Made by a program: the position numbers and the translations under genes
Shown here: positions 34,875 to 62,152 of the stretch, piece after piece
How positions within the stretch are numbered: position 1 is the stretch's first letter
How the letters are laid out: every line of letters begins with the position of its first letter
From: Mobula birostris
Lineage: Eukaryota
NCBI RefSeq assembly: GCF_030028105.1
Contig: NC_092374.1
Coordinates: forward strand, 8,484,998-8,548,997
DNA: 64,000 bases
Reading direction: 5' to 3'
Notes under the pieces: model-generated
The model's input: only the letters and a program-made list of their open reading frames with translations
The model's database searches: none
Told to the model about the DNA's origin: nothing

Positions 34875-34935
34875 ATGAGCTTACTGGGTTCCTGGCTGCC
34901 TGCTGCCCTGTTGTTGGGCTCTGTACTCAGTGACA
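34875..34935 (+). CDS. Ig-superfamily receptor exon 1: signal peptide MSLLGSWLPAALLLGSVLSD
   Basis: Hydrophobic leader ending at a phase-1 consensus donor A|GTAAGT; frame-compatible with exon 2. An in-frame upstream ATG exists at 34791. Confidence 0.8.
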
Positions 34936-35473
34936 GTAAGTGCTTTTTATTTTTCTCAGACTGACTTAGCTGTGTGAGTTTTCACTTCATCTCCACGGGC
35001 AGGGTCAGCATCTGGGAAACTGAGAGGTGGAGCTATCGGAGCAGGTTGTGGCAGCCTTTTGTCCAGTGGCAGCACGGTGAATACTGGTCGGGATAGTTGG
35101 AGCTGATAGCTGGCTTGACCTTACTTTATACTTTATACCTTATTGTCGCCAAACAGTTGATACTGGAACATACAATCATCACAGCGATATTTGATTCTGC
35201 GCTTCCCGCTCCCTGGATTACAAATCGATAGTAAATATTAAAAATTTAAATTATAAATCATAAATAAAAAATAGAAAAATGGAAAGTAAAGTTAGTGCAA
35301 AAAAACCGAGAGGCTGGATATTAGACAATAGACAATAGGTGCAGAAGTAGACCATTTGGCCCTTCGAGCCTGCACCGCCATTCTGAGATCATGGCTGATC
35401 ATCTGCTATCAATACCCGGTTCCTGCCTTGTCCCCATAACCCTTAATTCCCCTATCCATAAGATATCTATCTA

Positions 35474-36255
35474 GGGTACGGCCCAGATCCGGGTCAGGAT
35501 CTGTTCAGCAGTCTTATCACGGTTGGAAAGAAGCTGTTCACAAATCTGGCCGTACGAGTCTTCAAGCTCCTGAGCCTTCTCCCAGAGGGAAGAGGGACGA
35601 AAAGTGTGTTGGCTGGGTGGGTCATGTCCTTGATTATCCTGGCAGCACTGCTCCGACAGCGTGCGGTGTAAAGTGAGTCCACGGATGGAAGATTGGTTTG
35701 TGTGATGTGCTGCGCCGTGTTCACGATCTTCTGCAGCTTTTTCCGGTCTTGGACAGGATAACTTACATACCAGGCTGTGATGCACCCTGGAAGAATGCTT
35801 TCTACGGTGCATCTATAAAAATTAGTGAGGGTTTTAAGGAACGGGCCAAATTTCTTTAGTTTTCTCAGGAAGTAAAGGCGCTGGTGGGCCTTCTTGGCAG
35901 TGGACTCTGCTTGGTTGGATCAAGCCAGGTCATTTGTGATATTGACCCCGAGGCACTTAAAGCTTTTGACCTGTTCCACTTGCGCACCACCAATGTAAAT
36001 TGGGTCGTGCGGTCCGCTACTCCTTCTGAAGTCAACAAACAATTCTTTCGTCTTGCTGACATTGAGGGATAGGTTATTGTCTTCGCACCATGCCACCAGG
36101 TTCTTAATTTCCTCTCTGTACTCAAACTCATCATTACCCAAGATACAGCCTACAATTGTTGTGTCATCAGCAAACTTATATATTGAGTTTGATGGAAACT
36201 TGGCTACACAATCATGGGTGTACAGTGAGTACAGCAGGGGGCTGAGTACACAGCG
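35474..36255 (-). mobile_element. Rex1/L2-type LINE 3' fragment
   Basis: LSPLLYSLYTHDC...IYKFADDTTIVG...LSLNVSKTKEL. Confidence 0.85.
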
Positions 36256-38634
36256 CAGAACAGGCCTACTTGAAGAACCTACGATCAACACCCCAGATGT
36301 GGTATCTACAGGAGGAGCTGCCTCAGGGAGACAATGTCCATCAACAAAGATCCCCACCATCCAGGCCATGCCACCTCCTAGCAGATATTCTTTCAGATGT
36401 TTATCTGTGGCTCCTTTGGAAAGTTATAGGAATGTGCGAAGCTGCAGAGAGCAGTGGATTCTGCCCAAAGCATCACCGGTACACCCCTCCCCACCATCGG
36501 TTGTATCGACGGGAGGCAGAGATCCCCACCATACAGGCTATTTTCATCTTCTCACAGCTCGGCGGCACGGTAACATAGTGGTTAGCACAACACTTTACTG
36601 TACCAGTAACCCGGGTTCAACTCCTGTCACTGCCTGTACGTTCTCCCTGTGACTGCATGGGTTTCCTCCAGGTGCTCCCGTTTCCTCCCACAGTGCAAAG
36701 ACCTGCCAGTTGGCAGACTAATTGATCATTGTAAATTGTCCTCTGATTAGGTTAGGGTTAAATCAGGGATTGCTGGGCGGCAGTGGACAGGCCTGTTCAG
36801 TGCTGTATCTCAATAAATAAATAAAACATTAAAAAACAAAAATTCTGAAGTCCCACACCACTGGATCAGTAACAACTGCTTCTCCTCGACCATTCAGTTG
36901 TTGAACCGACTGACACAACTCTGATCACCGCAGTTCAGGAACACAAATAGGCTTTATCTGTCACATGTACATCGAAATTACCTATGGGTAACCCCAGGTA
37001 ATTTCTAAAGTACATGTTCAGCACAGCATCGTGGGCTGAAGGGCCTGTATTGTGCTGTAGGTTTTCTGTGTTTTTGTGAAACATACAGTGAGATGTGTCG
37101 TTTGCGTTAATGACCAACGCAGTCCGAGGATGTGCTGAGGTCAGCCTACAAGTGTCTCTGTACTTGCAGTGCCAACGTAATGTGGCCACAGCTCACTAAC
37201 TCTAACCCCACCGTATGTCTTTGGACTGTGGGAGGAAACCAGAGCACCCAGAGGAAACCCACACAGACGCAGGGAGAAGGTACAAACTCCTTCGAGACAG
37301 TGGCAGGAATTGAACCCCGATCCTACAGCTGACGCACTGTGAAGCTTTCCGCTAACCGCGATTACCACACTAACCACACTGTAAAACTTTGCACTAACTG
37401 CGATGCTACTACAAGTCATGAATGCCAGGAAAGTAGAGCAATGGACTAGCCACCAATGTTCTCTCTAAGGTCACACACATGCACACACATTCTTTTGCTA
37501 CTAGTGCGCAAAGGAATTTAAACTACACACTACAGGTTGTCACAAGATCACAAGATCACTAGACAAAGGAGCAGAATTAGGCCATTTGGCCCATCAAGTC
37601 TGCTCCGCAACTCCCCCATGAGCTAACTAATTCTCCCATCTAGTTCCAATTTCCGGCTTTTCTCCATATCCCTTGATACCCTGACTAATTAGATATCTAT
37701 CAATCTCCTCCTTAAACACCCTCAATGATCGGGCCTCCACAACTGTATGTGCAAATCCACGACCCTCTGGCTAAAAAAATTTCTCCTCATCTCTGTTTTA
37801 ACTGGGTACCCTCTAATTCTAAGACTATGTCCTCTTGTCCTGGACTCACCCACCAAGGGAAACAGCCTTTCCACATCTACTCTGTCCAACCCTTTCAACA
37901 TTAAACATTGTCACCTTCAACCTCGCTTATTAAGCTTAAGTTAAGCTTATTTCACTATCATACACAATCACAGTTCCTTTTCCGGTTTCTGATGCGGACG
38001 GCGTTGACAACATGGAGTTTGAGATGATTTGTCTGCAGATTTTAGAACTGACTTATTTATGCTGTTTTTATTGAAGAAATTATTCAGTGTGCATATGTTG
38101 TTGTCATTGGGCAAAAAATTGCGCACACTGGTCATTACAAATGAGAGGAAACATCGCCCAGCGGGCACCTTTGAGGTTCACCTGTGTTTATTGTCAGGGA
38201 GGTGGAGATGTTATCTTTGACCTGCACTGACAGTGGTCTCCCGATGACAAAGTCAAGGATCTAGTTGCAGAGGTACAAGAGGCTCAGGATTTGAGGCTAA
38301 TAAGGGAAAGAGATACAGGAGCCTTAGGTCCCACTCCTCCAGGTTCAGGAACAGTTATTATCCCTCAACCATTAGGCTCTTGACCCAGTGTGGTTAACTT
38401 CGCTCACCTCAACCCTGAATTAATTCCATAACCAGTGGAATCACATTTAAGGACTCTACAACTCATGTTCTTAGTATTATTTATCAATATATAACTTCTA
38501 TATTTGTACACATTGTCTTCGTACATTGTCATTTGCCAGTCTTTGTGTGTCACTAACTACACAATAGTCATTGTTCAAGTTGAAGTTTATTGTCATTCAA
38601 CCGCACACATTTATACAGCCAAAGAAAGCAACTT

Positions 38635-39870
38635 TGTTTTGCCCCAGCTTTGTTCACCATCTTTATTGTGACAATCATCCACGTCATCAGGGATGACCCA
38701 CTCCCAGGAATTGGAATTGTCTACAGAACAGTTGGCAGACTTTTCAATCTTGCCCGTCTCAAATCCAGAAACAAGACATCCACGAGTTCCCTCATCGAGT
38801 TCCAATACGCAGATGACAACAGTGTTGCAGCTCTTTCAGAAAACCACCTACGACAGATTCTGACTGCCTTCAACCGTGCATACATGAAACTTGGACTTAC
38901 CATCAATTCCAAGAAGACTCAGATCATCTATCAACCGTCACCAACTGAGACAAATTGGATAGAACCATCAATTCAACTTGGCGAAACAACCCTGGAAAAC
39001 GTGGACCACTTTCCGTATCTTGGAAGTCACCTCTCCTCCAATGTCGACTTTAATGACGAGATCCAACGTCGTCTTCCAAGGTTCAATGTCCATTTAGGAA
39101 TTGGATGGCAGAGGGGAAGAAGCTGTTCCTGAATCGCTGAATCTGTGCCTTCAGGCTTCTGTATCTCCTACCTGATGTTAACAGTGAGATCCAACAATAC
39201 GCTGGAACAGCTTTTGGATGTCTCCGAACAAGAGTCTTTCATGATCGTGCCATCTGAACAGACACCAAAATGTTATTGTACAAAGCAGTGGTGATCCCAA
39301 CTCTCCTGTATGCATCAGAAACCTGGACAACATACCAATGACATCTGAAGGCACTTGAAAAGTTCCATCAACGTTGTCTTCGAAACATCTTAAATATCAG
39401 CTGGGAAGATAGAAGAACCAACGTCAGTGTGCTAAATAAAGCAAAAACAACAAGCATTGAAGCCTACGTCATCAAAAACCAACTAAGATGGAGCGATCAA
39501 AAACGTTCGGATGAAAAACGAACATCTGCCGAAACAAATCTTCTACTCCCAGCTTAAAGAAGGCAAACGTAAAAGAGGCGGACAACAGAAGAGATTCAAA
39601 GACGTCTTAAAACCCAACATGAAGAAATGTAACATCAACGTCAACAATTGGGAAACCAGTGCCAAGGACAGGAAACTCTGGCAAGGCATCATCCGAGAAG
39701 GAACAGCAACTTTCCAAGCCAACAGATGTGCAGAATTAGAAGAAAAGAGAAGAAAATGGAGAGAGAGGCAGCAACAACCAAAGTCCGATCTGCCATCTGG
39801 AACTACCTGTCCTGAATGCGGAAGAACTTTCAAAGCCAAGATTGGACTCATAAGCCACTTGAGAGCCCAT
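38635..39870 (+). mobile_element. RTE-clade LINE 3' fragment with a short internal insert at about 39080-39190
   Basis: APALFTIF, EFQYADD, FPYLGSHLSS, ...CPECGRTFKAKIGLISHLRAH. Confidence 0.88.
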
Positions 39871-39875
39871 AAATA

Positions 39876-40195
39876 CAAGGGGTGATTGATAAGTTCGTGG
39901 CCTAAGGTAGAAGGCGATGAGTTATACAGCTCTCGTTATGTGCACATGCAGTTCAACTCTTTGATTGATTATGCAGAAAGTTTGAAGTTAATATCTTATT
40001 TCCTTCTACCTTAGGCCACAAACTTATCAATCACCCCTGCTGTGGACACTTTCAGGAGGTCCAAGATCCATATGCTCCACGAGCGCTGGACTAAGTGTGT
40101 AAATGTAGGAGGGGACTATGTTGAAAACAAATGTGCTGGGTTTTCTAAAATGGACTCCTTCTACCTTAGGACACGAACTTATCAATCACTCCTCG
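39876..40195. mobile_element. Non-autonomous mariner-type MITE
   Basis: TA-flanked TIR caaggggtgattgataagttcgtggcctaaggtagaagg and its inverse at about 40158-40195; internal ERWTKCVNVGGDYVE matches a mariner transposase C-terminus. Confidence 0.85.
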
Positions 40196-41529
40196 CACTT
40201 ACTTTGAACTTTGAACTTGATCTCCCACTATTTAACAAATACTCTGCATTTCTGTTTTGTTCAGCCCTGTAGGTTCCCTCACACTTCTCTGTAGTATATT
40301 GCACCTGACCCCAGGCTGATATTTCATCCCCTCAGCGGAATCATCGATGTAGATCTCGATTGCTGCCATATTCCAAGCAAACCCTAACCCTTGGAATATT
40401 CTCCTCTTTCTGGATGTGGGAGTTTGCAGGTCTGTAACTGAGGTTTCTCTTCGCCGAGTTTCAGAACACCAGAGGGGATTCTGCCTGCTCTCGAAGCCGT
40501 TTTGTTATTTTGTTTCTCACTCAGGGGCGGGCACTAGTAAACGCAGCCTAAAAAGTTGCTCTGTGTTAAAGCACTCACGGCCAGGACAGAGGCAAGGCTG
40601 CTAAAGTCTCCAACGTCCTCGCTTTGCCTCCTACAGTGCAGGGAAGTGTATGGTCATCCACCTTGGCAGAAAGAATAAAGGTGTAACACATGCAAAATTC
40701 TGGAGCAACTCAGCAGACCAGGCAGCATCCATGCAGATGAGTAAACAGTCAAAGTTTCGGGCCAAGACCCTTCATCAGCACTCTTTACTCTTTTCCACAG
40801 ATGCTGTCTGACCTGCTGAGTTCCTCCAGCATTTTGTCAGAATCAGAATCAGGTTTATTATCACCGGCATGTGTCGTGAAATTTGTTAACTTAGCAGCAG
40901 CAGTTCAATGCAATACATAATCTAGAAGAAGTAGAAATAATAAATAAATAAATGACAGGATGCATGTATTTAATAGATTAAATGCACATATATATTTAAA
41001 AAGTGAGGTAGTGTTCACAGGTTCAATGTCCATTTAGGAACCAGATGGCAGAGGGAAGAAGCTGTTCCTGAATTGCTGAGTGTGTGCCTTCAGGCTTCTG
41101 TACCTCCTATCTGATGGTAACAGTGAGAAAAGGGCATGCCCTGGGTGCTGGAGGTCCTTAATAATGAACGCTGCCTTTCTGAGACACTGCTCCCTGAAGT
41201 TCTCCTGGGTACTTTGCTGGCTAGTACCCAAGATGGAGCTGACTAGATTTCCAATCCTCTGCAGCTTCTTTCAGTCCTGTGCAGTAACCCTTCCATACCA
41301 GACAGTGATGCAGCCTGTCAGAATGCTCTCCACGGCACGACTATAGAAGATTTTGAGTATATTTGTTGACATGCCAAATCTTTTCAAACTCCTAATGAAG
41401 TGTAGCCACTGTCTTGCCTTCTTTATAGCGGCATCGATATGTCGGGAGTAGGTGAGATCCTCAGCGATTACTCCGGATTTCCAGCACCTGCAGATTTCCT
41501 CATGATGTAGATTATTTTCTAAATGGGGA

Positions 41530-42200
41530 GCAAATTCAGAAACCAAAGGTGCAAAGAGACCTGAGAGCCCCAGTGCAGGATTCCCAAATTTGCAGTGGTG
41601 AGGAAGGCAAATGCAATGTTAGCATTCATTTTGAGAGGACTAGAATATAAAAGCAAGACTGTAATGCTGAAGCTTTCCAAAGCAATGGTCAGAGCACATT
41701 TGGAGTATTATGAGCAGTTTTAGGCCTCAGGATGTGTTAGAGTCCAAAGGAGTTCACGAGAATGATCCCAGGAATGAAAAGGTTAACATACGAGGTGACT
41801 CTGAGCCTGTGCTTACTGGTGTTGAAAAGAATGAATGGTGATCTCATTAAAACCTATCAAATATTGAAGGGCCTAGATTGAGTGGATATGGAGAGGATGT
41901 TTCCTATCGTGGGGTAGGCTAGCACCAGCGGGCACAGCCTCAGAATAGAAGGACTTCTCTTTAGAACAGAGATGAGGAGGTATTTCTTGAGCCAGGGGTT
42001 GGTCAATCTGTGGAATTCATTGCCACAGACAGTCATTTAGTATATTTAAAGCAGAGGTTGATAGGTTCTTGATTAGTCAGGGTGTCAAAGGTTACGGGAA
42101 GAAGGCAGGAGAGGGATAATAAATCAGCCATAATGGGCAGGTGGAGCAGACTTGATGGGCTGAATGGCCTAATCCTGCTCCTCTGTTGTATGGTCATATG
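41530..42200 (+). mobile_element. CR1 LINE 3' fragment, decayed
   Basis: gcaaatgcaatgttagcattcatt...ggcacagcctcagaatagaagg CR1 tail sequence. Confidence 0.8.
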
Positions 42201-42914
42201 GTCTTTGTTCATTTAAAAAGAAAGTGATAGGATTCTGGACATTAAGAGCATTGAGAGGCAAGGGAGATGGTATTGAGATAAAGGATTGGGCGTGGTCTCG
42301 ATGAATGGCAGACAGGGCTTAAGGAGATGAATTGCCTTGACCTCTCATTTCCTAAGTTCTTGTGAAAGCAATGTCAACATTGGCTGCAGAAGTGATGAAA
42401 TATCGAAGTTCAGTCTACAACGGGAACTGGCACGAATGTTCTGGAGACTGCTCACCGAGCAGCTTGTGCCTCACACCCCACAAAGGCTCAGAGCTACAGG
42501 GTGGCTTTTAATGTCAATTGGCTCATTGTCATTAGAGTCAGAGAACCATAAAGTATAATAGCACACAAACAGGCCCTTTGGCCCATCTAGTATGTGTTGA
42601 ACTGATACTCTACCTTGTCCCATCTGCACCCTACTGCTCTGTACCCCTCCCATCCATGTATTTATCCAAATTTTTCTTAAATATTGCAATCAAGCCCAAT
42701 TCATCACTTCTGCTGACAGCTCATTCCACACTCTCACCACGCTCTGAGTGAAGACATTCCACCTTCAATATTTTATACCTTTCATGTGTTTTTTTTTAGA
42801 TATAGGAGCAGAATTAGGCCATTTGGCCCATCAAGTCTGTTCTGCCATTTCAACATGGCTGATCCATTTTTTCCTCTCAGCTCCAGTTTCCTGCCTTCTC
42901 CCCATATAAACATA

Positions 42915-43385
42915 GATTTACAAGGATGTTGCCTGGATTGGGGAGCAGGCCTTATGAGAATAGGTGAAGTGAACTTGGCCTTTTCTCCTTGGAGTGACGG
43001 AAGATGAGAGGTTACCTGACAGAGGTGTATAAGATGATAAGAAGCATTGATCGTGTGGATAGTCAGAGGCTTTTTCCCAGGGCTGAAATGGCTAGCACGA
43101 GAGGGCACAGTTTTAAGGTGCTTGGAAGTAGGTACAGAGGAGATGTCAGGGGCACGCTTTTTACACAGAGAGTTGTGAGTGCGTGGAGTGGGCAGCCACC
43201 AACTGTGGTGGCAGCAGATACGATAGGGTCTTTTAAGAGGCTCCTGGATAGGTACATGGAGCTTAGAAAAATAAAGGGCTGTTGGTAACCCTAGGTAATT
43301 TCTGAAGTAAGTACATGTTCGGCACAGCATTGTGGTCCGAAAGGCTTGTATTGTGCTGTAGGTTTTCAATGTTTCTATGTTTCTA
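42915..43385 (+). mobile_element. CR1 LINE 3' fragment
   Basis: MRGYLTEVYKM...RGHSFKV...LFTQRVVSAW. Confidence 0.85.
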
Positions 43386-46196
43386 TATCCCTTCATGCCC
43401 TGACTTATCAATTTCTGTCTTAAGTATACCCAGTTACTTGGTCTCCACAGCCGTCTGTGGCAATGAATTCCACAGATTCACCACCCTCTTGCTAAAGAAA
43501 TTCCTCCTTATCTCTTAGTCGTCCTTCTATTCAGCGGCTGTCCCCTCTGGTCTTAGATTCCTGCACCAAAGGAAACATCTTCTCCACATCCACAGCCCAG
43601 CTCATCTGTAGTTGTGAACTTCCCATGATTCAGGACATTTACAAAGACAGGTGTGAAGAAAGGGCCCAAAGGATCATTGGGGACCCGAGTCACCCCAACC
43701 ATGGTCCGGTCCAGGTGCTACCATCTGGGAAACGGTACTGCAGCATAAAAGCCAGAAACAACAGGCTCCAGGACAGCTTCTTCCACCAGGCCATCACACT
43801 GATTAACTCACACTGATTTGAGTGTATTTCTATATTACATTAACTGTTTTAATTATTATGAAGTATTATAAATTACTATGGTTCCACATTGCATATTTAG
43901 ACAGAGACATAATGTAAAGATTTTTACTCCTCATGTATGTGAAGGTTGTAAGAAATAAAATCAATTCAATTCAATTCTATCGAGGCCTTTCAACATTCGA
44001 TAGGTTTTAATGAGCTTCCTTCCTCATTCTTCTGAATTCCAGTGAACACAGCCCCAGGGCCATCAAACTCTCCTTAAACGATAACTTTTCAATTGGAAAT
44101 CATTTTCATGAACCTCCTTTGAATCCTCTCCCATGTCAGCACATCTTTTCTTAGATAAGGGAACCAAAACTGCTCACAATACTCCAAGACTAGAACTAGT
44201 GAGTTCTCATTTCACCCAGCCTTGGTGGAAAAAGTCTGCTTGCATTTACCCTACATATACCCACATAAACTTCTGTCAAATCTCCCCTCATTCTTCTGTG
44301 CTCCAGGGAATATAGTCCTAAACTACTCAGCCTTTCCCTATAACTCAGGTCCTCAAGCCCCAGCATCATCCTTATAAGTTGTCTCTGAACTCTTTCAGTC
44401 TCCTTGACATCTTCCCTGTAGGCGGGTAACCTGGAACTATTCACAATACTCACACAAATCTGAACCCGGTCTCAAAACTGTTTTCCACTTCCATTAATGT
44501 TCAACCGGTGATTGGGCAGGGGACTTTCATTATTGATCATTGTAACTGCTTTGCTACCATGCCTCTCTTAAAGATTTAAACTTAAAGAATGAAAGATTAG
44601 CCTTACTTGTCGCACGTGCATCGAAACATACAGTGAAATGCATTGCTTGCGGCAACGACCGACGCAGTCCAAGCATGTTCTGGAGGCAGCCCGCAAGTGT
44701 GACTATGCTTCCGCTACCAAAGCAACATGCCCACAGTTTACTAACTCTAACTTTGGTTTATTACTGTCACATCTACCAAGCTGTAATGAAAACCTTGTCT
44801 CGCCGACAGTTCCTGCAGATCAAGTCATAACACAGTGCATTGAGGTAGAACGAAGTAAAACAAGAACAGAATGCAGAATAAAGTGTAACAGCTACAGAGA
44901 AGGTGCAGTGCAGGTAAACAATGAAGTGCAGGATCATAATGAGTTAGATTGTGAGGCCAAGTGTCCATCGTATCGTGCAGGATGTTGTCCATATTATCAA
45001 ACACCCATGTGTCAGATTCAAGTGGAACAGTCTAATCTCCTGCTCTGCATCTTATCGTACCAGAGTCTTACATCACAGTGCACAATGAGCAATTGATAGG
45101 AGCTGTCCTCGAGCCTGGTGGGACGTACTTCCAGGCTTTTGTATCTTCTGCTCAGTGGGAGGAGGGAGACGAGAGAATGTCTGGGATGTTTGGGGGTCTT
45201 TGATTATTATTGAGGAGTGACAAGTACAGATAGAGTCCACGGAGGTGGGCTGGGAGGGGGCAGGGGGGGACGTTGGTTCCTGTGATGTGTTGATGTGTTT
45301 CTGCGGTTTCTGATACAGCTTACAGAGGTGTATGAAATCATTAGGGGCATAGACAGTGTGTATGTTCACCGTATGCTTTTCCCAGGGCACGGCTTGCTTC
45401 TCTGTATAGGCTATGCGTAAGTCAGGTGTTTGCCACCTGGCAAGGACTTGTATTCAAAGGTCTTGCCCTTGTCTGTAGTTCTTTATTTGTAGCACCTGAC
45501 ACGCAAAGTGCTTGAAGTCTGACTCCTCCTGCAAAATTGATAAACCCCAACATGGACAGAAGGCCTGATGATGGGTTTCTTAGTCAGTGTGCACTCTGTT
45601 ATCATCATCATTACGGCATGTCCTATGATGTGGGTGATCGCGGACTTTGACCATGATTGCTCTTGGCAAATTTTTCCACACAGGTGGTTTGCCATTGGCC
45701 CCGCCCCGCCGCATCCCAGGGTTGTAGCGAGGAAACTGGAGACTGGAGGCGGGGAGAGTGTGCAGACAGTGCCGGAATCCAGGATTGGACCTGGGTGACT
45801 GGAGCTGTGATGCAGTGTCTCTGTTCACCACATGACTGAGCTGTCACCACTGGTCATCCGGTTGCGAGAATTGGGGGGGGAGTGGGGGGGGGGGCGCCAC
45901 GGTAACGCGGCAGCTAATGCAACGTCATCACAGCTCAGGGCGTCGGAGTTCAGAGGTCAGTGCCAGTGGCGGCTGTGAGGAGTTTGTACGCTCTTCCCGT
46001 GTGCGCGTGGGTTTCCTCCGGGTGCTCCAGTTTCCTCCCACACCCCACAGTTAATAGGTGAATTGGTCATTCCAAATTTTCCTGTGTTTAGGCCAGGGTT
46101 AAATTGATGGGTTGCTGGGCAACGAAGGGCCTGGTTCACGATGCATCTCTAAATTTAAGCATAGCAATTAAAACCCGTTGTTCTCCCCTCTTTCAG

Positions 46197-46562
46197 CCTC
46201 CACTGTTTGGACCATTCCCTATGCCGACGACGTGTTTGCGATGGAAGGAGGCTCTGCGCTGTTGCCGTGTACTGTCATCGACCTCACTCTCCCCTACACT
46301 GTGACATGGTTAAAAAGCGACCTGTGGGGTTACAATGCCGTGGCCAAGTGTACGTACCACAGTCCCTTCCACTCCCAGTGCAGCAACATGATTCAGGAGG
46401 CAGAAGGCGGCCGGATCATATTCGTGGGGGACCTCAGCAAGGGGGATGCCTCAATCATGGTGCAGCGTCTGAAGCGGAGTGACGGTGGTCAGTATCAGTG
46501 TTACATTCCAGACATCAGTGGGATGTTTGTAACAATGGGCTATACACAACTGACGGTCAGAG
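46197..46562 (+). CDS. Ig-superfamily receptor exon 2: V-set Ig domain 1
   Basis: Acceptor ttctcccctctttcag|, donor G|GTAAGG, both phase 1. Canonical V-set residues: LLPC, VTWL, GRIIFVGDLSKGDASIMV, SDGGQYQC. Confidence 0.92.
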
Positions 46563-46926
46563 GTAAGGAGCAATGTTCAGGTTTAAAACTAAAGCTTATT
46601 TTTTGTTCTTATTTATTTAGAGGGACAGTGTAGAACTGGTCTTTCCAGCCCAACGAGCTGCCCACTCAGCAGCCCCCTGATTTAACCCCAGCCTAATCAC
46701 AGGATGACCAACTAGCATACATGTGGACCTACAGGGGTAACCCCTCTGTAGTGGTCTGTAATTACGATGACCAACGAGCCTGTAAGCAGCATGTCATTGC
46801 AGTGAGGGAGGAAACAGTGGCTCCCGGAGGAAACCTGCTCACTCACAGAGAGAACGTGCAAACTTTCTGACAGGGGACGCTGGAACTGAGCTCTGAACTC
46901 TGACGCCTCGAGCTGTTAGGGTATCT

Positions 46927-47245
46927 AGTAAAGTAAAGGCATCTGTTAGTCTTCTGAGACCATGGATCTGCGCCTGGAAAGTCTTCACCCTCCAGGGCGC
47001 AGGCCTAGGCAGGGTTGTATGGAAGACCGGCAGTTGCCCATGCTGCAAGTCTCCCCTCTCCACGACACCAATGTTGTCCAAGGGAAGGGCATTAGGACCC
47101 ATACAGCTTGGCACCAGTGTCATCGCAGAGCAATGTGTGATTAAGTGCCTTGCTCAAGGACACACCACGTTGCCTCGGCTGGGGCTCGAACTCACGACCT
47201 TCAGGTCACTAGTCCAATGCCTTAACCACTTGGCCACGTGCCCAC
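46927..47245 (-). mobile_element. tRNA-derived SINE (second family) with a (TTTAC)n tail
   Basis: Minus-strand head gtggccaagtggttaaggcattggactagtgacctgaaggtcgtgagttcgag (A/B boxes); near-identical to 63630-63943. Confidence 0.85.
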
Positions 47246-47255
47246 ATCACAAACT

Positions 47256-47690
47256 CAACAAACGCATTCGTAAGGCCAGTGATGTTGTGGGGTTGGAACT
47301 GGACTCTCTGACGGCGGTGTCTGAAAAGAGGATGCTGTCCAAGTTGCATGCCATCTTGGACAATGTCTCCCATCCACTACATAATGTACTGGGTGGGCAC
47401 AGGAGTACATTCAGCCAGAGACTCCTTCCACCGAGATGCAACACTGAGAGTCATAGGAAGTCATTCCTGCCTGTGGCCATCAAACTTTACAACTCTTCCC
47501 TTGGAGGGTCGGACACCCTGAGCCAATAGGCTGGTCCTGGACTTATTTCCATCTGGCATAATTTACATATCATTATTTAATTATTTATGGTTTTATATTG
47601 CTATATTTATACTCTACTCTTGGTTGGTGCAGCTGTAATGAAACTAAATTTCCCTCGGGATCAATGAAGTATGACTATGACTATGACTAT
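47256..47690 (+). mobile_element. Rex1/Babar LINE 3' fragment with a (TATGAC)n tail
   Basis: Third copy of the family at 17697-19052. Confidence 0.9.
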
Positions 47691-50189
47691 AACTACACAG
47701 ACCACTAACCTACCGTGGTGCCCAAACTTAGCTTCGTTTGTCCCACGTACATGGAAACAGGCAGCAAGATTTCACATTTGCATCAGCAACCAATACGGTC
47801 CGAGGAGTCTTTGGAGGCAACTCGCATGCTTTCAGCACCCACATAGCATGCCCACAACCTGCTAATCTGCCCACCTGCACGTCTTTGGAGTGTGGAAGGA
47901 AACCGAGGCACCCGCCATCACAAGGAGTACGTACAGACTCCACATAGACAGCAGAAGAAGTCCAGCACGAACCTGTACGTCTGGCCTACAGAACTAACCC
48001 CTCTGTAGCGAAACCCGCTGGAAGTTGCGTTCCCGCAAACAGGGGCTGTCTGACATACTCCCACAGTTAAGTAAGCCACTGCTTGTTCAAAGTTGAAGTT
48101 ACACAGAAGAGCAATGAAAAACTGACTTGTGCAGCATCCCAAGCAGAGAGCGTGGCAGTTAGTGGAATGCCCTTACAGCTTGGGATGTTGGAGCTCGGAG
48201 TTTATTCCAGTGCTGTCCGTAAGGAGTTTGTACGTTCTCCCCGTGAGCGCATGGGCTTCCTCCGGGTGCTCTGGTTTCCTCCCACAGTCCAAAGACGTAC
48301 CAGTTAGCGGGATAATTGGTCATTGTAAATTGTCCTGTGATTAGGCTGGGGTTAAATAGGTGGGTTGCAGCTCAAAGTGCCGGAAGGGCCTGTTCCATGC
48401 TGCTGTGTCTCTCAATAAATAAATACATTTATTAATTAAACAGCATTGGATCAGCAGCTTTCACAAGGGAAGTGTTGGTGTTGGCCAGGCCGCTAAAAGA
48501 AAGGGCATTGGCTGAAACCATGAGGTTGTGTCATCAATCAAGGGAACGTGAGTCCATATCATTCCAGGGTTTTAAATGTAACATTGAAATAAAATTGTCA
48601 TGGAAACTAAAATTAATCCTAGTTAGGATGAATTGTGGAAATGCAGAGTTAGTCAAACCAAATCTACTTCATTGCTATAGTCTGGGAAGGAAGTCTATCT
48701 TGCTTACCTTGTCCGGCAGGGCCTGAGTCTGCGAGTGAGGAATGACCCCAGGTTTGGATGATTGAAGCACTGGGCCAGATTGAAAACTCATGGTATCAGG
48801 ACCAGGGGCGAGGGACGACTTGGTTCAGATCGCTGCTCCACGAGGTTTACTGGTCTTTGCACTGAACTGAGGCTGTGGCCTGCACCTAACTGGCTTCTGA
48901 ATCATGAACTTCAGTTCTGAATGCCATTTACTTACTTTTATTGTTTTTCTTCTCACTGTAACTTGGGTGTTCGATGGTCTTCTTCTGTTTTGATGAGTTC
49001 TATTGGGATTTCTTTGTTTTGTGGCTGCCTCCAAGGAGACGAATCTCAAAGTTATGTAAAGTATACATACTTTGATAAGTTAAGTTTGAACTTTGGCTTA
49101 CATGTGACAACGGACATGCCAGCGTGGTGCACCCATAACAGCCACCACAGTTCAGAGGCAAATAGGGGTGGGCTGTGGTTGTGTAGCAGTTCGCACAACA
49201 CTTTACAGTGCCAGCCATCCTGCTTCAATTCCCACCACTGTCTGTAAGGAGTTTTGTACATCCCCCTGGTGACTGCACGGGAGGTTAGATCAGATTAGCT
49301 TTAATTGTCACGCCAAAGCATACAGCGAAATGTGTCATTTACGTCAGCGACCAACACAGTCCAAAGATGTTCTGGAGAGCATCCCACAAGTGTCGTCATG
49401 CTTCTGGCACCAACGTAGCACGCCCACAACTTACTGACCCCAACCCGTATATCTGACTGAGTAAAACTGAGAAAGTACAGAATCAGCTGTACCCTAATCA
49501 CTAGAAAATTTACTGAACAATTAAGTCTACATACGGTGATTATATAAAAATTAAAAGCAAGCACAGAAGACTAAATTACTAGAAAAATAACAATTCTACA
49601 CTCCAATCCAACAGAGTGCAGCAGATGCTTTTGGACACCAAGTCCCTCAGCCACCTGCTGAGGAGATGTCCCCTGGGCTGACCTGGGTTGAGGAATGCCA
49701 GTATCTGAGCTGGTGGCTGACCACACCTTCTCAAGTGACAGCTGCCTTCGTAGACCTGTCCTCTTGCTAAATAGCGGCTCCCTGAACGGCTGGGTGTCCC
49801 AGGACACTGGAACGAAGAAAGGCACCCAGGCAATGTGAGAGGTTGCGGCCCAAAGCCAACTGTATCAACCAGCTGTTGATGGTAGTGGGTGGACTGGTCT
49901 TACCTGTGCGGTCACCGGACAGTGTCTCCCAGCACCATCACTGTCATTGTCACATCCAAAGGGTCTCCCACCACTGGACAGTGTCTCCCACCACCACCGT
50001 CACTGTCACTATCACATCTGAAGGCTGTCACTGGCTCACGAGTACATTTGAGTGGGAAGTGCCTCGGTGAGACATGCGTGCAGTGAGATCAGCCAGAAGG
50101 GTGTGGAAGTCTGAAGTGTGGTAATGGTACAAGAAGGAGCGATGTGTGGGTTTGTGTTTGTTTGTGAGTACATACACGTGTGGGAGGAA

Positions 50190-50193
50190 TGTG

Positions 50194-50262
<69 letters not shown>
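50190..50262. repeat. (TG)n microsatellite
   Basis: Long TG run. Confidence 0.97.
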
Positions 50263-50267
<5 letters not shown>

Positions 50268-50288
50268 GGGGTGGTGGTTCTGTGTATG

Positions 50289-53271
50289 TGGGAGTCGCAT
50301 TGGCCATCAAGAACACCTCTCTACCAAGTCTCACAGAAACACCTGTTGGCATTACTGAAAGACTAATGACCCTCCGTATCCCCCTGGCAAAGAAACGTCA
50401 TGCCATGCTTCTCAGTGCCTAGCACCAACTTTGCCTTCTGAGAATGAGGCCAAGGAATGCTTTTATCAGACATTGGATGAAGCTCTTTGCCGGATCCCTA
50501 AGAATGATAAGATCCTTTTGCTTGGGAACTTCAACAGGATATGGAGTGGAGTGCTAGGTAGGCATGGTATTGGCAAGGTGAATGCAGATGGCAGGAGACT
50601 GCTTACTCTTTGCTCTGAGCATAACCAGCACCATCTTCCAGCAGAAGGCAGAATATAAGACCTCGTGGATGCACCCTCACTCTAAACATTGGCACATGAT
50701 CGACTTCGTCATTGTGAGACGTAGTGACATCAAGGATGTTCTCATCACCCGTGCCATGAGAGGTGCAGGGTGCTGGACTGACCACCGTATGATTGTGGCC
50801 AAAAGCTCCATATGAAAGTGCGTCCCCCCTTGCGGCTGCAAAAACCCAATAAAAAGCAGCCAAATTGCAATTGCCTGAGAAACACAGAAGCAAGAAGTGA
50901 GTTTCAACACATCCTAGCTGAGAAACTAAGAGAGCTGGAACCTTATCTAAGCTCAGAAAATACCATGGAACAACAGTGGACCTACGTTTGTATATCAGCT
51001 CTGCGCTCTATGAGGCAGCAGCCCAATCCATTGGCCATAACAGCAGGATCCACCAAGACTGGTTTGATGATAACTCAGACACCATCCACAACTTGCTAAA
51101 GGACATGCTCAAAGCACATCAGGCAACTTTAGACAACCCTTCATTCACCAGCATCAGACAGCATTGGCAGGCAGCTCGGAGGAAAGTGCAAAAGGCAATA
51201 CGGGCCATACAAAATGAGTGGTGGACTGAAAAGGCACATGAAATCCAGTCCTTTGCCGATAATAATGACATGCATAATTTTTACAATGCTGTCAAAACCA
51301 TCTATGGCCCGATAAATCGATGAGTTACTCCCCTGAAAACAGCAGATGGTCTAACACTTCTAAAGAATCAGAATACCATTCTGCTGAGGTGGGCTGAGCA
51401 TTTTAACACCCTGCTTAATCAGGACTCTGACGCAAACCCCACCATCCCGGACGACCTGCCTGAACTTCCTCCTATCCACGACCTCAGACTACCACCAACC
51501 TTCCAGGAGGTTCAATCCCTTAAGAACAACAAGTCCCCCGGCACTGACAATATCCCTACTGAGTTACTGAAGAACGGAGGGTACATGTGTATGCGCACCC
51601 TCTACCAGTACATCGCCAAGGCCTGGACTGATGAGAACATCCCACAGCAATGGAGAAATTCAAACACTGTTGTCATTTATAAGAACAAGGGTAACAAGGC
51701 CATCTGCGGCAATAGTAGGGGCATATCACTCCTTTCTGTTGCTGGAAAGTCCTGGCTAAGGTGATGCTTCAGAGACTGATTAGCAAAATCACCGAGTCAA
51801 TGCTGCCTGAATCGCAGTGTGGATTTAGGAAGAACAGGATCACGATCGACATAATCTTCACAGCCAGGCAGCTTCAAGAAAAGTGCCGGGAGCAACATCA
51901 GGACCTGCTTATGGCCTTTGTCGACCTCTCCAAAGCATTCGACACCGTGCAAAGAGAGCTCTTATGGGATGTCCTCCTTAGGTTTGGCTGTCCCAATAAA
52001 TTGTTAACATCCTCCGCCAGTTCCACAATGGGATGATTGCTCGGGTGACAATAGGAGGACAAGAGTCTGAGCCCTTCCTTGTACGCACAGGGGTGAGGCA
52101 GGGGTGTGTACTAGCACCTGTGCTCTTTAACATCTTCCTCTTGTGTGTTACCAAGCTTCTCCACAACGAGACTGAAGACAGCAGCAGGGTGGCAGTGGAC
52201 GTCAGATTAGATGGCAAACTCTTTGACATCAGGAGGCTTCACGCAGCCAGCAAACTCGATAGAGAGCGGGTTCTGGAGCTGCAGTATGCAGACGACTGTG
52301 CTCTGTGGCCCATACTCCGGAGGATCTTCAGACTGTCCTTGCCGTGGCGGTGAGAGTGTACAGCAGGATGGGGCTGACTGTCAATACCACCAAGACAGAA
52401 GTGGTTTGCCAATGGAGTACCAGTGTCCCACCCACTCTACCTGCCTTCACTGTTGGTGATGAAAAGCTATCAGTAGTGCCATCTTTCAAATATCTGGGGA
52501 GCATTCTCTCTGGGGATAGCGGCATTGACAACGACATCCTGAGCCGCATTAAACAGGCATCAGCTGCCTTTGGGAGACTTCGGCGTAGAGTCTTTCAGAA
52601 CAGGAGCCTTCGTCCCTCCGCAAAGGTCGCCGTATACCAAGCGGTCTGTGTCACCACCCTCCTTTATAGCTGTGAAGCTTGGGTAACCTACAGCCGTCAC
52701 ATCAAGTCCTTGGAGCGCTTCCACATAAGCTGCCTCCAGCGCATCCTGGGAATTACCTGGCGTGAGCGGGTGCCTCACACTGAAATACTTGTAAAGACCA
52801 ACTGCAGAAGTATTGAGGCCATGATCACCCAGCGCCAGCTGCAGTGGCTGGGGCAGGTGATAAGGACGCCCCCATGTCGGCTACCCCGCAGAGTGTTATA
52901 CGGCCAGCTACATCATGGTCGGCGCTCAGCTGGAGGGCCGAAGAAGCGCTATAAGGATCAGATGAAGAATGCTTTGAGGAAGTGCAACATCAGACCCAAG
53001 GACCTGGAGGATGTTGCTGCTGACCGTACCACTTGGCGACGGCTGTGTAGGGACGGGGTTCGTATTCTGGAGATGGAAAGAACAACCAGAAGACAGCAGA
53101 AGAGAGCCAGGAGAAATGCAGTCATGGTTGTCACCACCACCACATATACATGTCCCACCTGCAATAGAGCTTGTGGGTCCAGGATAGGACTGTATAGTCA
53201 TCAAAGATCTCACCATTAAAGGAGTGGACGTCGTCATCAGATTTCGATGGACAACTGACCAACCGAAGAAG
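50289..53271 (+). mobile_element. Near full-length RTE-clade LINE (APE + RT + C-terminal zinc finger), frameshifted
   Basis: GVALAIK...TERLMTLRI (APE); LPESQCGFR, AFVDLSKAFDTV, GVRQGCVLAP, LQYADD (RT); CPTCNRACGSRIGLYSHQRSH; short GAAGAAG tail. Confidence 0.92.
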
Positions 53272-53719
53272 GTGTGTGTGTGTGTGTTTGTGTGAGTGTG
53301 AGTGTGTGTGTGTGTGTGTGTGGGGGGGATGTATTATGTATGGGGGTAACATGTGTGTGCGTTGGGCACCAACTGCGACAGGGATCTTCTGGGATGTAGA
53401 TGATTGAGTTACTGACCAACCACATCTTTGCTGACCTTCAACACCAGTGTGAGACCTCAGATCCCACCACCAAGAGTATGGGCTCCGATCCCTGGGGGGA
53501 GATTTTCACCACATGGCTAGATCTCTATAGGCATTGGGCCTCTGTTCTCTCTACCCTTCCTACTGGGATGTCCAGTGTTGTGTCTAAAACTTATTCAGTG
53601 TGATACAAGGCATCGGTTCACATTTCCAAGTTTGTCTAAGAAACCTCCCTCTTTTCTCCTCACTCTTTGCTTGGAGCCATTCGTGAATCAATACTGTCTG
53701 GTGTCTGTCCTCCTCTCAG

Positions 53720-54094
53720 CTTCCGATGGGAAAGACCTGGAGGTGACTGGAACCGAGGGAGCTTCGGCCACGTTACCCTGTGAGTTCACACGGCCTCCAC
53801 AGAGCCTTATCTCACTCACGGTGACGTGGATGAGGAAGACTCCTTACCGACACATCGTCACCTTCAGGCGCCAAGCAAGTGGATCGTGGGCAGCGGAAAA
53901 CGGGGTGACTCGGTACGAGCTCGTCGGGGATCCAGAGCTGGGGAATGCCTCGACCAGGATAAAGCAGCTGAGTGTGGAGGACAGTCACAGCTACCTGTGT
54001 CTGGCTGAGTTGAAGATCAGGACTGACAATGAATTTACTTCGTCCTTGATCATCCATCTGTCCCTGTATGAGGCCCACCTGCGGATGAGAGCTG
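53720..54094 (+). CDS. Ig-superfamily receptor exon 3: V-set Ig domain 2
   Basis: Acceptor gtcctcctctcag|, donor G|GTGAGA, both phase 1. ATLPC, VTWM, RYELVGDPELGNAS, VEDSHSYLC; N-glycosylation sequon NAS. Confidence 0.9.
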
Positions 54095-54229
54095 GTGAGA
54101 AATCGCACCCTGGGGTGTACACGGAGGGTGAGGGAGGAAGGGGAGCAAGCAACGCTGCACCGTACAGCCCAGTACAGGCCCTTCGGCCAACGATGTTGTG
54201 TCAACCTCATAACCTACCCAAAGATCAGT

Positions 54230-54830
54230 CTAACTCTTCTGTCCCACATTGCCTCCATTTTTCTGCCATGCATTCACTTGCCTATCCAGGAGTATCTTAA
54301 ATGTCCCTAACGTATCTGCCTGTACCACCACCCCTGCTGGGTGTGTTCCTAGCATCCACCGCTCTGTGTGTAAAGACCTACCTCTGACATTCCCCCCCAC
54401 TCCATACTTCCCTCCAGTCACTTTAAAACTGTGCTTTGACTTATTAGTCATTTCAGCCCTTATCATCTTATCATCTTGTATGCCTCTTATCATCTTGTAC
54501 GCCTCTGTCAAGTCAGCCCTCAACTCCTTTGCTCCAAAGACAAAAGCCCAAGCTCGCTCAATCTATCCTCATGAGACATGCTCACTAATCCAGGCAGCAT
54601 CCTGGTAAATCTCCTCTGTACCCTCTCTGGATCTTCCACATCCTTCCTGTAATGAAGTGATCGGAAGTGAACACGGTACTCTAAGTGTGGTCTAAATAGG
54701 ATTTTGTAGAGTTGCAACTCTTGTGGTTCTTGAATTCAATCCCTCGACTAATGAATTCAAACACACCATTCGCTTTCCGAACCACCCTATCAAGTAGAAC
54801 AGCAATTTTGATTTATCTGTGGATGTGAAC
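54230..54830 (-). mobile_element. CR1 LINE 3' fragment
   Basis: LYKILFRPHLEYRVHF...RRFTRMLPGL. Confidence 0.85.
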
Positions 54831-55064
54831 CCCAATCACTAGAGATCTGTGTGTTCAGTGCTGACCACCAGCACCAGCTGTGTGGAGTTTGTACTATCTC
54901 CCTGTGAATGCCTGTATTTCTCTGACACTCTGGTGCTTCCTTTCACACCCCAGAGGCGTGCAAGTCAGCGGGTTAATCGGGTTATGTAAAATGCCCCTAG
55001 TTGGGGTGATTGATAGAATCTACGTTGGTGTGGGAAGAACATGAAAATGGGTTTAACAAATCAG

Positions 55065-55745
55065 AGGTACAAAGGGATTTGGGAGTCCTCATGCAGGACT
55101 TCCTATAGGTTAACTTGCAGGTTGAGTCAGTGAGGAAGGCAAATGCAATGTTAGCATTCATTTTGACGGGAGTCGAATATAAAAGCAAGGATGTGATGAT
55201 GTGGCTTTATAAGGCATTAGGAGTATTGTGCGCAGTTTTGAGCCCCTTATCTAAGAAAAGATATGCCGGCATTGGAGAGGGTCCAGGGGAGGTTCATGGG
55301 ACTGATTCCAGAAATGAAGGGGTTAACTGGCCATTGGCCCGTACCCTCTGGAGTTTAGAATAATGGTGGGGGGGGGGGGGCGGCGGAACCTTATTCAAAG
55401 CTATTGAATATTGAAAAGCCTAGATAGGTTCGATGTGGAGAGGATGTTTCCTATCGTAGGAGAGTCTAGGACCAGAGGGCACAGCCTCACAATAGAGGGA
55501 TGTCCCTTTAGAACAGAGATGAGAAGGAGTTTCTCTAGGCAGAGGGTGGTGAATCTGTGGAACTCATTGCCACAGACAGCTGTGGAGGCCAAGTCATTGC
55601 AGAAATTTAAAGTGGAGATTAATAAGATCTTGATTAGTCACGTTGGCAAGGGTTATGGGAAGAAGACAGGAGTATGGAGTTGAGAGGGTTAATAGATCAG
55701 CCATGATGGAATGTCAGATTGGCCTTATTCTGCTCTGTGTCTTAT
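55065..55745 (+). mobile_element. CR1 LINE 3' fragment
   Basis: ESRTRGHSL...QRVVNLWNSLPQTAVEA. Confidence 0.85.
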
Positions 55746-55995
55746 GATCTAAATTCTCATCATTATTAAGGTTTCTTGCTGCCTCAGTCTTAGGGGAAAT
55801 CCTGTGACCAACCTACTCGGTTCTCTCCACTTTGTTTGTCCTTTGCCGATCCCACCTCCCTTCTGACAATTGCCACTTGCTTCTGAGTTACACACTCTTC
55901 AGTCTGCCCACAGAGTTTACTTAAATGTCCCTGCATTTTTGGGCTCTCTCCCACTTTGTTGGAATCTAGTTTGACCTCTCTCACTTTCTCTTCAG

Positions 55996-56095
55996 TCAAG
56001 CAGATGTCCCCCGTTATGCTGTTGTGTATCCCACTCGGAATGAAAATTTTCACCTTGTTAGTGATGGGCATCATTTTATACAAGATCAAACCCAG
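55996..56095 (+). CDS. Ig-superfamily receptor exon 4: transmembrane exon with an intramembrane Lys (VKQMSPVMLLCIPLGMKIFTLLVMGIILYKIKP); not in the ORF track
   Basis: Strong acceptor ctctctcactttctcttcag|, phase-1 compatible with exon 3; donor AG|GTATGT (phase 2). About 23-aa hydrophobic stretch with a central Lys (AAA 56043-56045) and a basic stop-transfer segment KIK. Confidence 0.85.
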
Positions 56096-58073: not shown

Positions 58074-58922
58074 TGTTACGTACCCGTAACTGGGTTGCCA
58101 AACCAGCAGAAATAGACCACTTAGTTGGAGTCTGGATTACTGGAACTAAGAAAGTTTTATTAAAGAAATAAGTAACACAGTACTCTAAATGTAAGGATAT
58201 AAATGCAACGGGTTAGCAATGATAAAACACACATGTACACAGAACTAGGATAATAGGATCAATCAAGCTCTATCCCAGTCTAGGGGTAAAATGATCAGTC
58301 TCAAGTGACACAGAGTTCAGTTCAGTTCAGTTCGCAGTAATTGCTGTTGTGCCGTTGGGGGGAGAAAGAGAGAGCGAATGATGATATTCAAATCGGATTC
58401 AACAGACCTTTGATATTCCTCGCAGTTAGCTTTCGGGCGAGCCCTTTGTAATGTCTTCTGAGGTCACCGACTGTGACCCCTCCGTTCCGGATACAATCGT
58501 TCTTCTGCAGTGAACCCGGCCCCCAGGCAAGGGTGGACACACACACACACCAGGTTCTCGCCGACCGTACCGTCTCCCCCTGTGCATCTATGGTTGGTCC
58601 AGCGATCAGACCTCCAAAACTCCCACCAGCTTGTGGGGGCACACCACTTTTCCAGGGTCTCATTATCTCGTGGTGTCGTGGTGTGTGTTCCTTGCCTTAG
58701 CGAACCTGTTCCTTTTATTCCCCTGCTGGGGTATCGCCTGTCCATCAAACTTCAAACAGTTCAGGTTCAAAGCAACCAGTGTAAACAATACTCAGAACTG
58801 TGTCTCTTTTCGTTAATCTCTCTCGTCTCTCTCTGATTAGCATTTTGAATGTTTCCCCCATTTGTCTCTCTCTTATCTCTCTTATCGGCATCAATCTTCT
58901 GATAACTTGGTATTTTGTCACA
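58074..58922 (-). repeat. 3' LTR of the Gypsy element (849 bp)
   Basis: Direct repeat of 62153-62995. Confidence 0.95.
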
Positions 58923-59094
58923 TACCCCTATCCTTCAAGGATTTTTACCGAGGTAAAAATTATAGGCATGAATACACTATTAGATACACACAAATATACA
59001 TGTTCATCAGCTATTTGGCTAATACAGAGAACTTTAAGTTGCCAACACCTTGACAGACAGTCAGCAATCACATTTTCCATTCCTTTTATATGTG

Positions 59095-59610
59095 TTATTT
59101 TAATAATCCTCTAAGACCAGGCTCCAATTTAGCAAACTTCATAGTGGCCAAAAACACCAATAAGTTGTGATCCTTGTAACTTCTCAGTGGTTTTCGTCCC
59201 GGACCAAGATAACAAGGGTCGTCCCATACCAATTTAGCATTCTTTGGCAAGAGCTTAGTAAGAGGGTGGGTAATATCCGCAAAGTTCTTGCAAAACTTCC
59301 TATAGTACCCCACCATCTCCAAGAACCTTCTCAGGGCTCTCTTGTCTGTCGGGGTTAGGACGTCAGAGATAGTCCGCACCTTAACTTGCATCGGGGCCAG
59401 CTGCCCCTGTCTTACCACAAATCCCAGATAAGTGATTTTCGCGTGGCCGAATTCACTTTTTGCGAGGTTCACTGTCAGGTTGGCTTCGGACAGCCGTTTA
59501 AACAACTCCTCTACTGCCACAATGTGCTCCTCCCACGTGTCACTCCAGACCACTACATTCCCAATATACACTTCTGTGTTCTTTAGCCTTTTTGTCACTG
59601 AATTAATCAT
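59095..59610 (-). pseudogene. Gypsy RT C-half fused to the RNase H end; catalytic motif decayed (YIGN for YIDD)
   Basis: EVYIGNVVVWSDTWEEH...LTVNLAKSEF...LRRFLEMVGYYRKF...; ends with YKDHNLLVFL. Confidence 0.85.
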
Positions 59611-59944
59611 TCTATAGGGGTGTTGCTCACTAGGCTGACCTGATGTGACAGCAACACCATGTTCCAGCTCTTTGCATCACCTCGGGACATTCGGACATAT
59701 GTGTGCGTGCCGTTTAATTAGTTCTCGTAATGGGTCGCTTTGTTCAGGGATTAAGTGAGAGAACTCATCAGCAAAGTTGGTCAACACAATAGAGTTCTCC
59801 CATCTGGTCAGCACCACATTTATCTTTTCAAAATGGGTCCTCCCTTTATCAGGTGGCACCCTAGCCTCATTAATTTTCATGATATCACCAGCTAGATCTG
59901 TTTTCTGATCATGGTGAGCTTTTAACATGTTAATAGCCTCTAAC

Positions 59945-61133: not shown

Positions 61134-61178
61134 CGCGTACTCATCCGCTAACTTAGCAGTTGCGGCTAAAGTGTCTGC

Positions 61179-62054: not shown

Positions 62055-62130
62055 TTCTGCTGTTTGCCTTTTCTTTCTTTCGGGAATTTTAACCCAATCA
62101 ATTTACCCTGTCCCAAATTTAGCATTTAAA

Positions 62131-62148: not shown

Positions 62149-62152
62149 CTTA

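Follow-up and report, generated by a model that had tools for sequence, protein, structure and literature searches.

A stretch of 64,000 nucleotides from the giant manta ray Mobula birostris (assembly GCF_030028105.1, contig NC_092374.1, positions 8,484,998 to 8,548,997 of the forward strand), here called the window, contains four coding exons of an immunoglobulin (Ig) receptor gene. The encoded protein is probably a type I receptor with two V-set domains (D1 and D2) from a Siglec-15-related family of cartilaginous fish, with a DAP12-type lysine in its transmembrane (TM) helix and with the lectin arginine of the Siglecs lost. On sequence grounds, the manta gene belongs to a large multigene family of sharks, rays and chimaeras that shares ancestry with Siglec-15. 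An earlier note on this DNA, made from its letters alone, could not place the receptor in any named family; the structure match of D2, the TM motif and the tree of V domains now identify it as a relative of Siglec-15.

The four exons (61, 366, 375 and 100 nt; Table 1) join in phases 1, 1 and 1 and give a frame of 300 codons without a stop. Their donors read GTAAGT, GTAAGG, GTGAGA and GTATGT, the acceptors of exons 2 to 4 are pyrimidine-rich tracts ending in CAG, and the window is free of N. Direct reading and scripted joining therefore bear out the exons and GT-AG sites described in the earlier note. The spliced product is 100% identical to residues 1-300 of the M. birostris RefSeq protein XP_072113662.1 (P0216), a 305-residue “uncharacterized protein isoform X1” whose exon boundaries match exactly, and because of this identity the four-exon splice is not a product of chance. 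The gene is intact, as the earlier note had held. The gene was not hidden, as had been thought, but is already annotated in RefSeq, though unnamed.

The cytoplasmic exon that was missing from the earlier model is absent from the window and lies beyond position 64000. The part of the tail that follows residue 300 consists of five residues, RDDPD, and a stop, on a fifth exon past the window end; a DNA pattern search for this exon gave 0 matches in the 64-kb window, and tblastn gave none either. The RefSeq gene range is 32,721 bp. If it starts at the ATG, the gene ends at about 67.6 kb in window coordinates, and therefore the tail exon could not be found inside the window.

Cluster look-ups returned three RefSeq isoforms (X1, X2 and X3) of this one “uncharacterized protein”. 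In isoform X2 (P0176) the TM exon is skipped and the tail exon is read in another frame, which yields a 31-residue non-membrane end, so that X2 would be a soluble form of the receptor. In isoform X3 (P0002), splicing from an internal donor after 46487 removes 25 residues, among them the F-strand cysteine of D1. The TM exon is retained in two of the three isoforms; its skipping in all transcripts, which the earlier note had named as fatal to its reading, was not seen. RefSeq is not known to propose alternative isoforms except from transcript alignments.

The leader-V-V-TM layout of the earlier note agrees with the Pfam matches, the RefSeq identity and the predicted structure. Both V exons match the Pfam V-set family (7.8e-10 for D1 and 4.1e-13 for D2), and the two domains are 31% identical to each other. 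D1 contains the canonical pair Cys45-Cys122 and an extra Cys72/Cys82 pair, whereas D2 contains Cys163-Cys236, with Leu237 at the position of the Siglec arginine and a conserved glycosylation sequon at N218. The second domain is V-set and not C2-set, as indicated by its Pfam match and by the C' and C'' strands of an AlphaFold2 model that was built from an alignment of 30 sequences of the V-V family (mean pLDDT 77.6, pTM 0.70). This model has two nine-strand V-type sandwiches (residues 32-142 and 150-266), a helix at 273-298 that holds Lys284, and a hydrophobic helix at 7-15 that corresponds to the signal peptide region. The predicted fold supports a V-V over a V-C2 layout. The top Foldseek matches in the PDB are two-V proteins, with JAML first (E 4.5e-16), followed by pIgR and single-chain variable fragments. 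JAML resembles the manta protein in its pair of tandem V-set domains ahead of a TM segment. The likeness is structural only (about 19% identity), and JAML differs in having a long signalling tail and no Siglec-15-type TM motif.

The family placement starts from D2. Among solved structures, the best match of this domain is the V domain of Siglec-15 (7zoz, 4.7e-9), and pIgR, TIM and nectin follow at about 1e-3; no TREM or CD300 chain occurs among the 60 matches listed per domain. The nearest characterised V domain, via D2, is thus that of Siglec-15. For D1 the best solved structure is SCN2B (1e-6), while Siglec-15 scores a weak 0.008. SCN2B shares a small extra disulfide region with D1 and was considered as its kin; given the family context and the tree, the match was rejected as a generic V-set likeness. 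Compared directly with the gull Siglec-15, D2 gives 3e-14 and D1 8e-7. An exhaustive HMMER search with the D2 exon over 1.84 billion representative proteins returned a 280-residue M. birostris protein, and all eight named single-V matches of about 300 residues were called Siglec-15 (gull, frog, axolotl, characin, whale, white and basking sharks, and skate).

Orthologues are found in other rays. That of Mobula hypostoma (LOC134346383) is 87% identical to isoform X3 and 93% to X1, with a gene span of 32,563 bp that is similar to the manta's, and those of Hemitrygon akajei (automatically named IGSF3-like) and Hypanus sabinus (LOC132396280) are 70% identical each. The orthologues have 301-305 residues and a common TM region and RDDPD tail. 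A full-length search yielded over 40 paralogues (40-55% identity) from rays, skates, sawfish and electric ray, many of which bear the automatic name Siglec-15, and the family genes of M. hypostoma bear consecutive LOC numbers, consistent with a gene cluster. Two-V proteins with such domains also occur in chimaera, cow shark, lungfish, gar, salamanders and lampreys. The earlier suggestion that the receptor is lineage-specific therefore stands for the orthogroup, which is confined to rays, and fails for the broader family, which extends to lungfish, gar, salamanders and lampreys. A search of the available literature for a description of the V-V family found none.

The relationship to Siglec-15 is further defined by a separate Siglec-15-named gene of M. 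hypostoma, LOC134346377 (P0028), which has a V-V-C2-TM(Lys) layout and a TM region that matches the whale-shark Siglec-15. XP_072113662.1 is colinear with it over both V domains (28% identity over 234 residues, E 1e-23). Together with Callorhinchus LOC103174418, this protein resembles the manta receptor in its colinear sister V domains and lysine-bearing TM helix; the manta gene differs in lacking the C2 domain and in belonging to a separate, expanded clade. The NCBI proteins P0028, P0037 (Callorhinchus) and P0027 (Heptranchias), named Siglec-15 or Siglec-12, have V-V-C2 and not V-C2 ectodomains.

For the phylogeny, 83 V domains were cut out with a seed hidden Markov model and used for a quick and a careful tree. 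In the careful tree, the family D1 domains (28 rows) and the family D2 domains (27 rows) are each split off by a 100/99 branch, and the bony-vertebrate Siglec-15 V domains group at 98/86. The cartilaginous-fish V-V-C2 proteins form one group for their first V domains (100/92) and another for their second (99/94). In the backbone, family D1 and the first V domains of the V-V-C2 proteins are sisters (97/87), as are family D2 and the second V domains (98/89). The manta orthogroup, composed of the two Mobula species, Hemitrygon and Hypanus, is recovered at 99/99 for D1 and 100/96 for D2. These relationships are most simply explained by a common ancestor of the V-V-TM family and the V-V-C2-TM(Lys) genes and by loss of the C2 domain in the former. 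In the quick tree, with a conger BTN-like protein as the root, the bony-vertebrate Siglec-15 V joins the first type (97); its extra cysteine pair is common to family D1 and absent from the first V of the V-V-C2 proteins. In the two-V proteins of lamprey, gar, lungfish and salamanders (P0050, P0068, P0029, P0033, P0041 and P0063), the two V domains cluster with each other within a protein or lineage. Such clustering points to internal duplications that arose independently, or to homogenisation, and contrasts with the ancient separation of D1 and D2 in cartilaginous fish.

The TM helix contains a single lysine, Lys284 (K284; codon 56043-56045), placed centrally in the conserved motif PLGMK, and the tail KIKPRDDPD, of about nine residues, has no tyrosine motif or other signalling motif. 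These features bear out the intramembrane lysine and the activating-type build recognised in the earlier note, since one basic TM residue and a short tail without signalling motif are the hallmarks of DAP12-coupled receptors. BLASTP between TM regions alone gave 62% identity to the whale-shark Siglec-15 (E 2e-4) and an E value of 1e-5 against the gull Siglec-15. The motif CIPLG[LM]K is common to the lysine-bearing relatives, and the TM motifs of Siglec-15 elsewhere read VPLGIK in gull, LGAK in frog, LGIK in lungfish and IPLIK followed by GIILFMKIK in whale shark. By homology, the TM exon is that of Siglec-15. The lysine of Siglec-15 is conserved from fish to mammals (PMC7226832). [quoted passage not shown] The TM helix of the stingray orthologues holds both an acidic (Glu) and a basic (Lys) residue, where Mobula has PLGMK.

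Other family members (P0004, P0014, P0202, P0091 and others) are of the inhibitory type. Their TM helix is uncharged, and their tail, about 100 residues long, contains V/I-x-Y-A/S-x-V motifs, that is, immunoreceptor tyrosine-based inhibitory motifs (ITIM). Lysine-TM/short-tail and ITIM/long-tail relatives thus coexist, and the paired-receptor arrangement is present at the level of the family. An inhibitory twin with a near-identical ectodomain to that of the manta gene was not found in the full-length search, in which its nearest paralogues show 41-55% identity.

The sialic-acid site of D1 is altered. In human Siglec-15, R143 is an F-strand residue, and the mutation R143A abolishes sialic-acid binding (PMC7226832). 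This position directly follows the Ig-fold cysteine. The manta D1 reads C-Y-I-P-D, with Tyr123 (46502-46504) in the arginine column, and its orthologues have N, H and H. On the other hand, C-R-V/L/M-E/D-L, with the arginine, is present in most family D1 domains and, with two exceptions, in the sampled V domains that are named Siglec-15; every family member has Leu at this column in D2. Of the features of a Siglec, the receptor has the N-terminal V-set domain and lacks both the F-strand arginine and a following C2-set domain. The manta receptor is probably not a canonical sialic-acid lectin, since D1 lacks the F-strand arginine in this gene and in its ray orthologues. Proteins of Narcine and Leucoraja that group with the manta D1 (6-row set, 99/92) have S and N at the same column, and because the arginine-less state is common to these relatives it would be old and maintained. 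The replacement looks like a maintained change of the binding site and not like decay, because the fold-defining residues are all kept. In M. hypostoma LOC134346377, neither V domain keeps the arginine (Leu and Cys at the column).

The arginine is kept in all five ITIM forms sampled, and among TM-bearing members its losses all fall in lysine-TM forms. With five changes of each trait, an independent-pairs sign test gave p = 1 and is unpowered, and no claim of association is made. The pattern is suggestive in that it recalls the primate paired Siglecs, without statistical support.

In the proposed mechanism, the receptor would be a type I membrane protein with a signal peptide, D1 and D2, of which a very short stalk leads to the TM helix, K284 at its centre, and on to the tail of about nine residues. 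D1 and D2 would match, one after the other, the first and second V domains of the V-V-C2-TM(Lys) Siglec-15-like proteins, with the C2 domain lost. Within the membrane, K284 would be held by a salt bridge to the aspartate of an ITAM adaptor of the DAP12 type, as expected from homology, and ligand binding would signal through Syk, while the ITIM-tailed relatives would deliver the opposing signal. With the F-strand arginine gone from D1, the ligand may be other than canonical sialic acid. The TM-skipping isoform X2 would supply the soluble form.

Several points weigh against this interpretation. The exon junctions rest on RefSeq predicted models, and one of the RefSeq isoforms (X2) drops the TM exon. 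The Hemitrygon and Hypanus orthologues (P0177 and P0178) read PLEMK, and a glutamate two residues before the lysine could alter the pairing. An intramembrane lysine is able to pair with DAP10 or other adaptors. The pairing of K284 with a DAP12-type adaptor is inferred, and a DAP12 (TYROBP) gene is only presumed in the manta. A survey from 2014 did not find an FcR-gamma chain in sharks and is silent on DAP12 there (PMC4016189), and searching the literature on cartilaginous-fish DAP12 turned up no relevant paper. How the bony-vertebrate Siglec-15 V attaches to the two cartilaginous-fish V types depends on the rooting of the tree. Finally, some lectins bind sialic acid without the canonical arginine, so that the loss of binding is only probable.

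Alternative explanations were weighed against the same evidence. The TM motif and the V-domain similarity would also suit a manta orthologue of Siglec-15, a known gene under an uninformative name, but this is very improbable. Siglec-15 is V-C2-TM, whereas the manta protein is V-V-TM without C2; the essential arginine is absent; M. hypostoma possesses LOC134346377 as a separate, distinct V-V-C2-TM(Lys) gene; D1 and D2 fall in their own 100/99 clades, apart from the V-V-C2 proteins and the bony-vertebrate Siglec-15; and each species has many family members, ITIM forms included. One-to-one orthology to a well-characterised gene, which the earlier note had said would remove the novelty of the receptor, was therefore not found. 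There is likewise only a very small chance that the receptor comes from another activating Ig family (TREM, CD300/pIgR-like, NITR or skate MDIR) and that its likeness to Siglec-15 is that of any V-set domain. Weaker solved-structure matches do include pIgR, TIM-3, CD33 and SCN2B, one Narcine paralogue is automatically named pIgR-like, and pIgR appears in the Foldseek list. Nevertheless, the Siglec-15 score of D2 is about five orders of magnitude better than that of pIgR (4.7e-9 against about 1e-3), the TM exon matches Siglec-15 specifically, the eight named single-V matches of about 300 residues all carry the Siglec-15 name, and neither TREM nor CD300 appeared among the 60 solved-structure matches listed per domain, a comparison without MDIR and NITR sequences.

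A decaying or functionless family member is improbable. Such a gene could explain why Tyr123 replaces the arginine and the following VEL becomes IPD, why isoforms X2 and X3 look non-canonical, with the loss of the TM segment or of an Ig-fold cysteine, why the branch of the D1 clade is long (0.46 in the quick tree) and why the gene lies among transposons. The frame is nonetheless intact in four species of two ray families, and the family-invariant residues are all kept (G38, A41, L43, P44, W58, L112, C122, L139, W179, C236 and others), as are both Ig disulfide pairs, the extra cysteine pair, and, across the orthologues, the TM lysine and the RDDPD tail; the arginine-less state shared with Narcine and Leucoraja is, moreover, an old one that has been maintained. 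It is unlikely, but the least so of these alternatives, that a real receptor uses its TM lysine for an adaptor other than DAP12—DAP10-like, FcR-gamma/CD3-zeta-like or another—or for receptor assembly. Siglec-15 also binds DAP10, weakly and under over-expression (PMC6941304), the adaptor repertoire of cartilaginous fish is uncertain (PMC4016189), and the glutamate of the stingray orthologues lies close to the lysine. However, the whole TM motif, beyond the lysine alone, is conserved with Siglec-15, for which dependence on DAP12 has been established by experiment (PMC6941304, PMC7226832).

The Siglec-15-related, DAP12-type receptor favoured here shares with Siglec-15 a V-set domain of the Siglec-15 type, including the extra cysteine pair after the C strand (manta D1), a homologous TM exon with the PLGxK lysine, a short stalk, the type I orientation and the lack of a signalling motif. 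It differs in the second V-set domain that takes the place of the C2-set domain, in the tyrosine that stands for the F-strand arginine and in having a tail of only some nine residues. Descriptions of Siglec-15 present it as single-copy and activating only, and it is treated as a single, conserved Siglec, whereas the manta gene is one of many paralogues per genome, some of them ITIM-tailed. The primate paired Siglecs (Siglec-5/14 and Siglec-11/16) resemble the V-V family in combining ITIM forms and TM-charge/DAP12-type forms with related ectodomains, and the arginine-mutated Siglecs, such as human Siglec-XII, resemble it in that individual members are without the lectin arginine. All of these, unlike the V-V family, belong to the CD33-related branch and not to the Siglec-15 branch.

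If the placement is correct, the Siglec-15 lineage of cartilaginous fish has expanded into a multigene V-V family with lysine and ITIM forms and with some arginine-less members. Paired receptors would then have evolved a second time, independently, within the Siglec superfamily, and the family would offer a natural test of the role of a Siglec-15-type receptor once sialic-acid binding is lost. Dozens of ray and shark proteins that are labelled uncharacterized or mislabelled as IGSF3-like, JAML, HAVCR1-like or pIgR-like would also receive a family name. A more far-reaching version is tentative and rather doubtful at present: a clustered two-V paired-receptor family might have split from Siglec-15 by loss of the C2 domain, and within it an old, ray-wide activating lineage might have left sialic acid for a new ligand, e.g., a pathogen or a non-glycan self ligand. 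If true, the Siglec-15 branch would have evolved in a manner known so far only for the mammalian CD33-related Siglecs. It would also contradict the view of only four fish Siglec types, given as Siglec-1, CD22, MAG and Siglec-15 (PMC7226832).

Table 1. Exons of the manta receptor gene and other features of the 64-kb window
Feature	Position	Strand	Description
Coding exon 1	34875..34935	+	ATG and signal peptide, residues 1-20 and base 1 of codon 21; GT donor at 34936
Coding exon 2	46197..46562	+	D1, Siglec-15-type V-set domain, residues 21-142
Internal alternative donor GTCAGT	46488..46493	+	RefSeq isoform X3 versus splice model
Coding exon 3	53720..54094	+	D2, second V-set domain, residues 143-267
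Coding exon 4	55996..56095	+	Short stalk, TM helix with Lys284 and tail start KIKP; ends in phase 2
Long terminal repeat (LTR) retroelement	58341..62990	-	In the last intron, after the TM exon and before the tail exon, which is outside the window; does not belong to the gene

A tblastn search of the 64-kb window with the receptor's own domains and eleven family proteins found no further Ig or family exons. A weak 25-residue match to the C-strand region of D1 at 10618-10692 (+) (tblastn E 0.011; 0.15 with P0176) may be a relic Ig exon or chance. An open reading frame (ORF) of 304 codons at 52305-53219 (+), just 5' of exon 3, has no Pfam match.

The transposon debris of the earlier note describes fairly the parts checked, namely reverse transcriptase (RT) fragments in intron 1 and an LTR element 3' of the TM exon. 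The putative LTRs of the latter are indicated by near-identical ORF translations at 58341-58451 and 62427-62528. Its interior, on the minus strand, comprises a gag-like region (61179-61673), a CCHC-knuckle/protease-like region (60504-61133) and an RT-like region (59095-59610), and looks too short for a complete element. The RT fragments of intron 1 lie at 35920-36369 (-) and 38590-39132 (+), with Pfam RVT_1 matches of 3.6e-9 and 9.2e-8. An ORF at 39511-39885 (+) of the same intron has a C2H2 zinc finger at its end (1.1e-4, which does not reach the Pfam cut-off).

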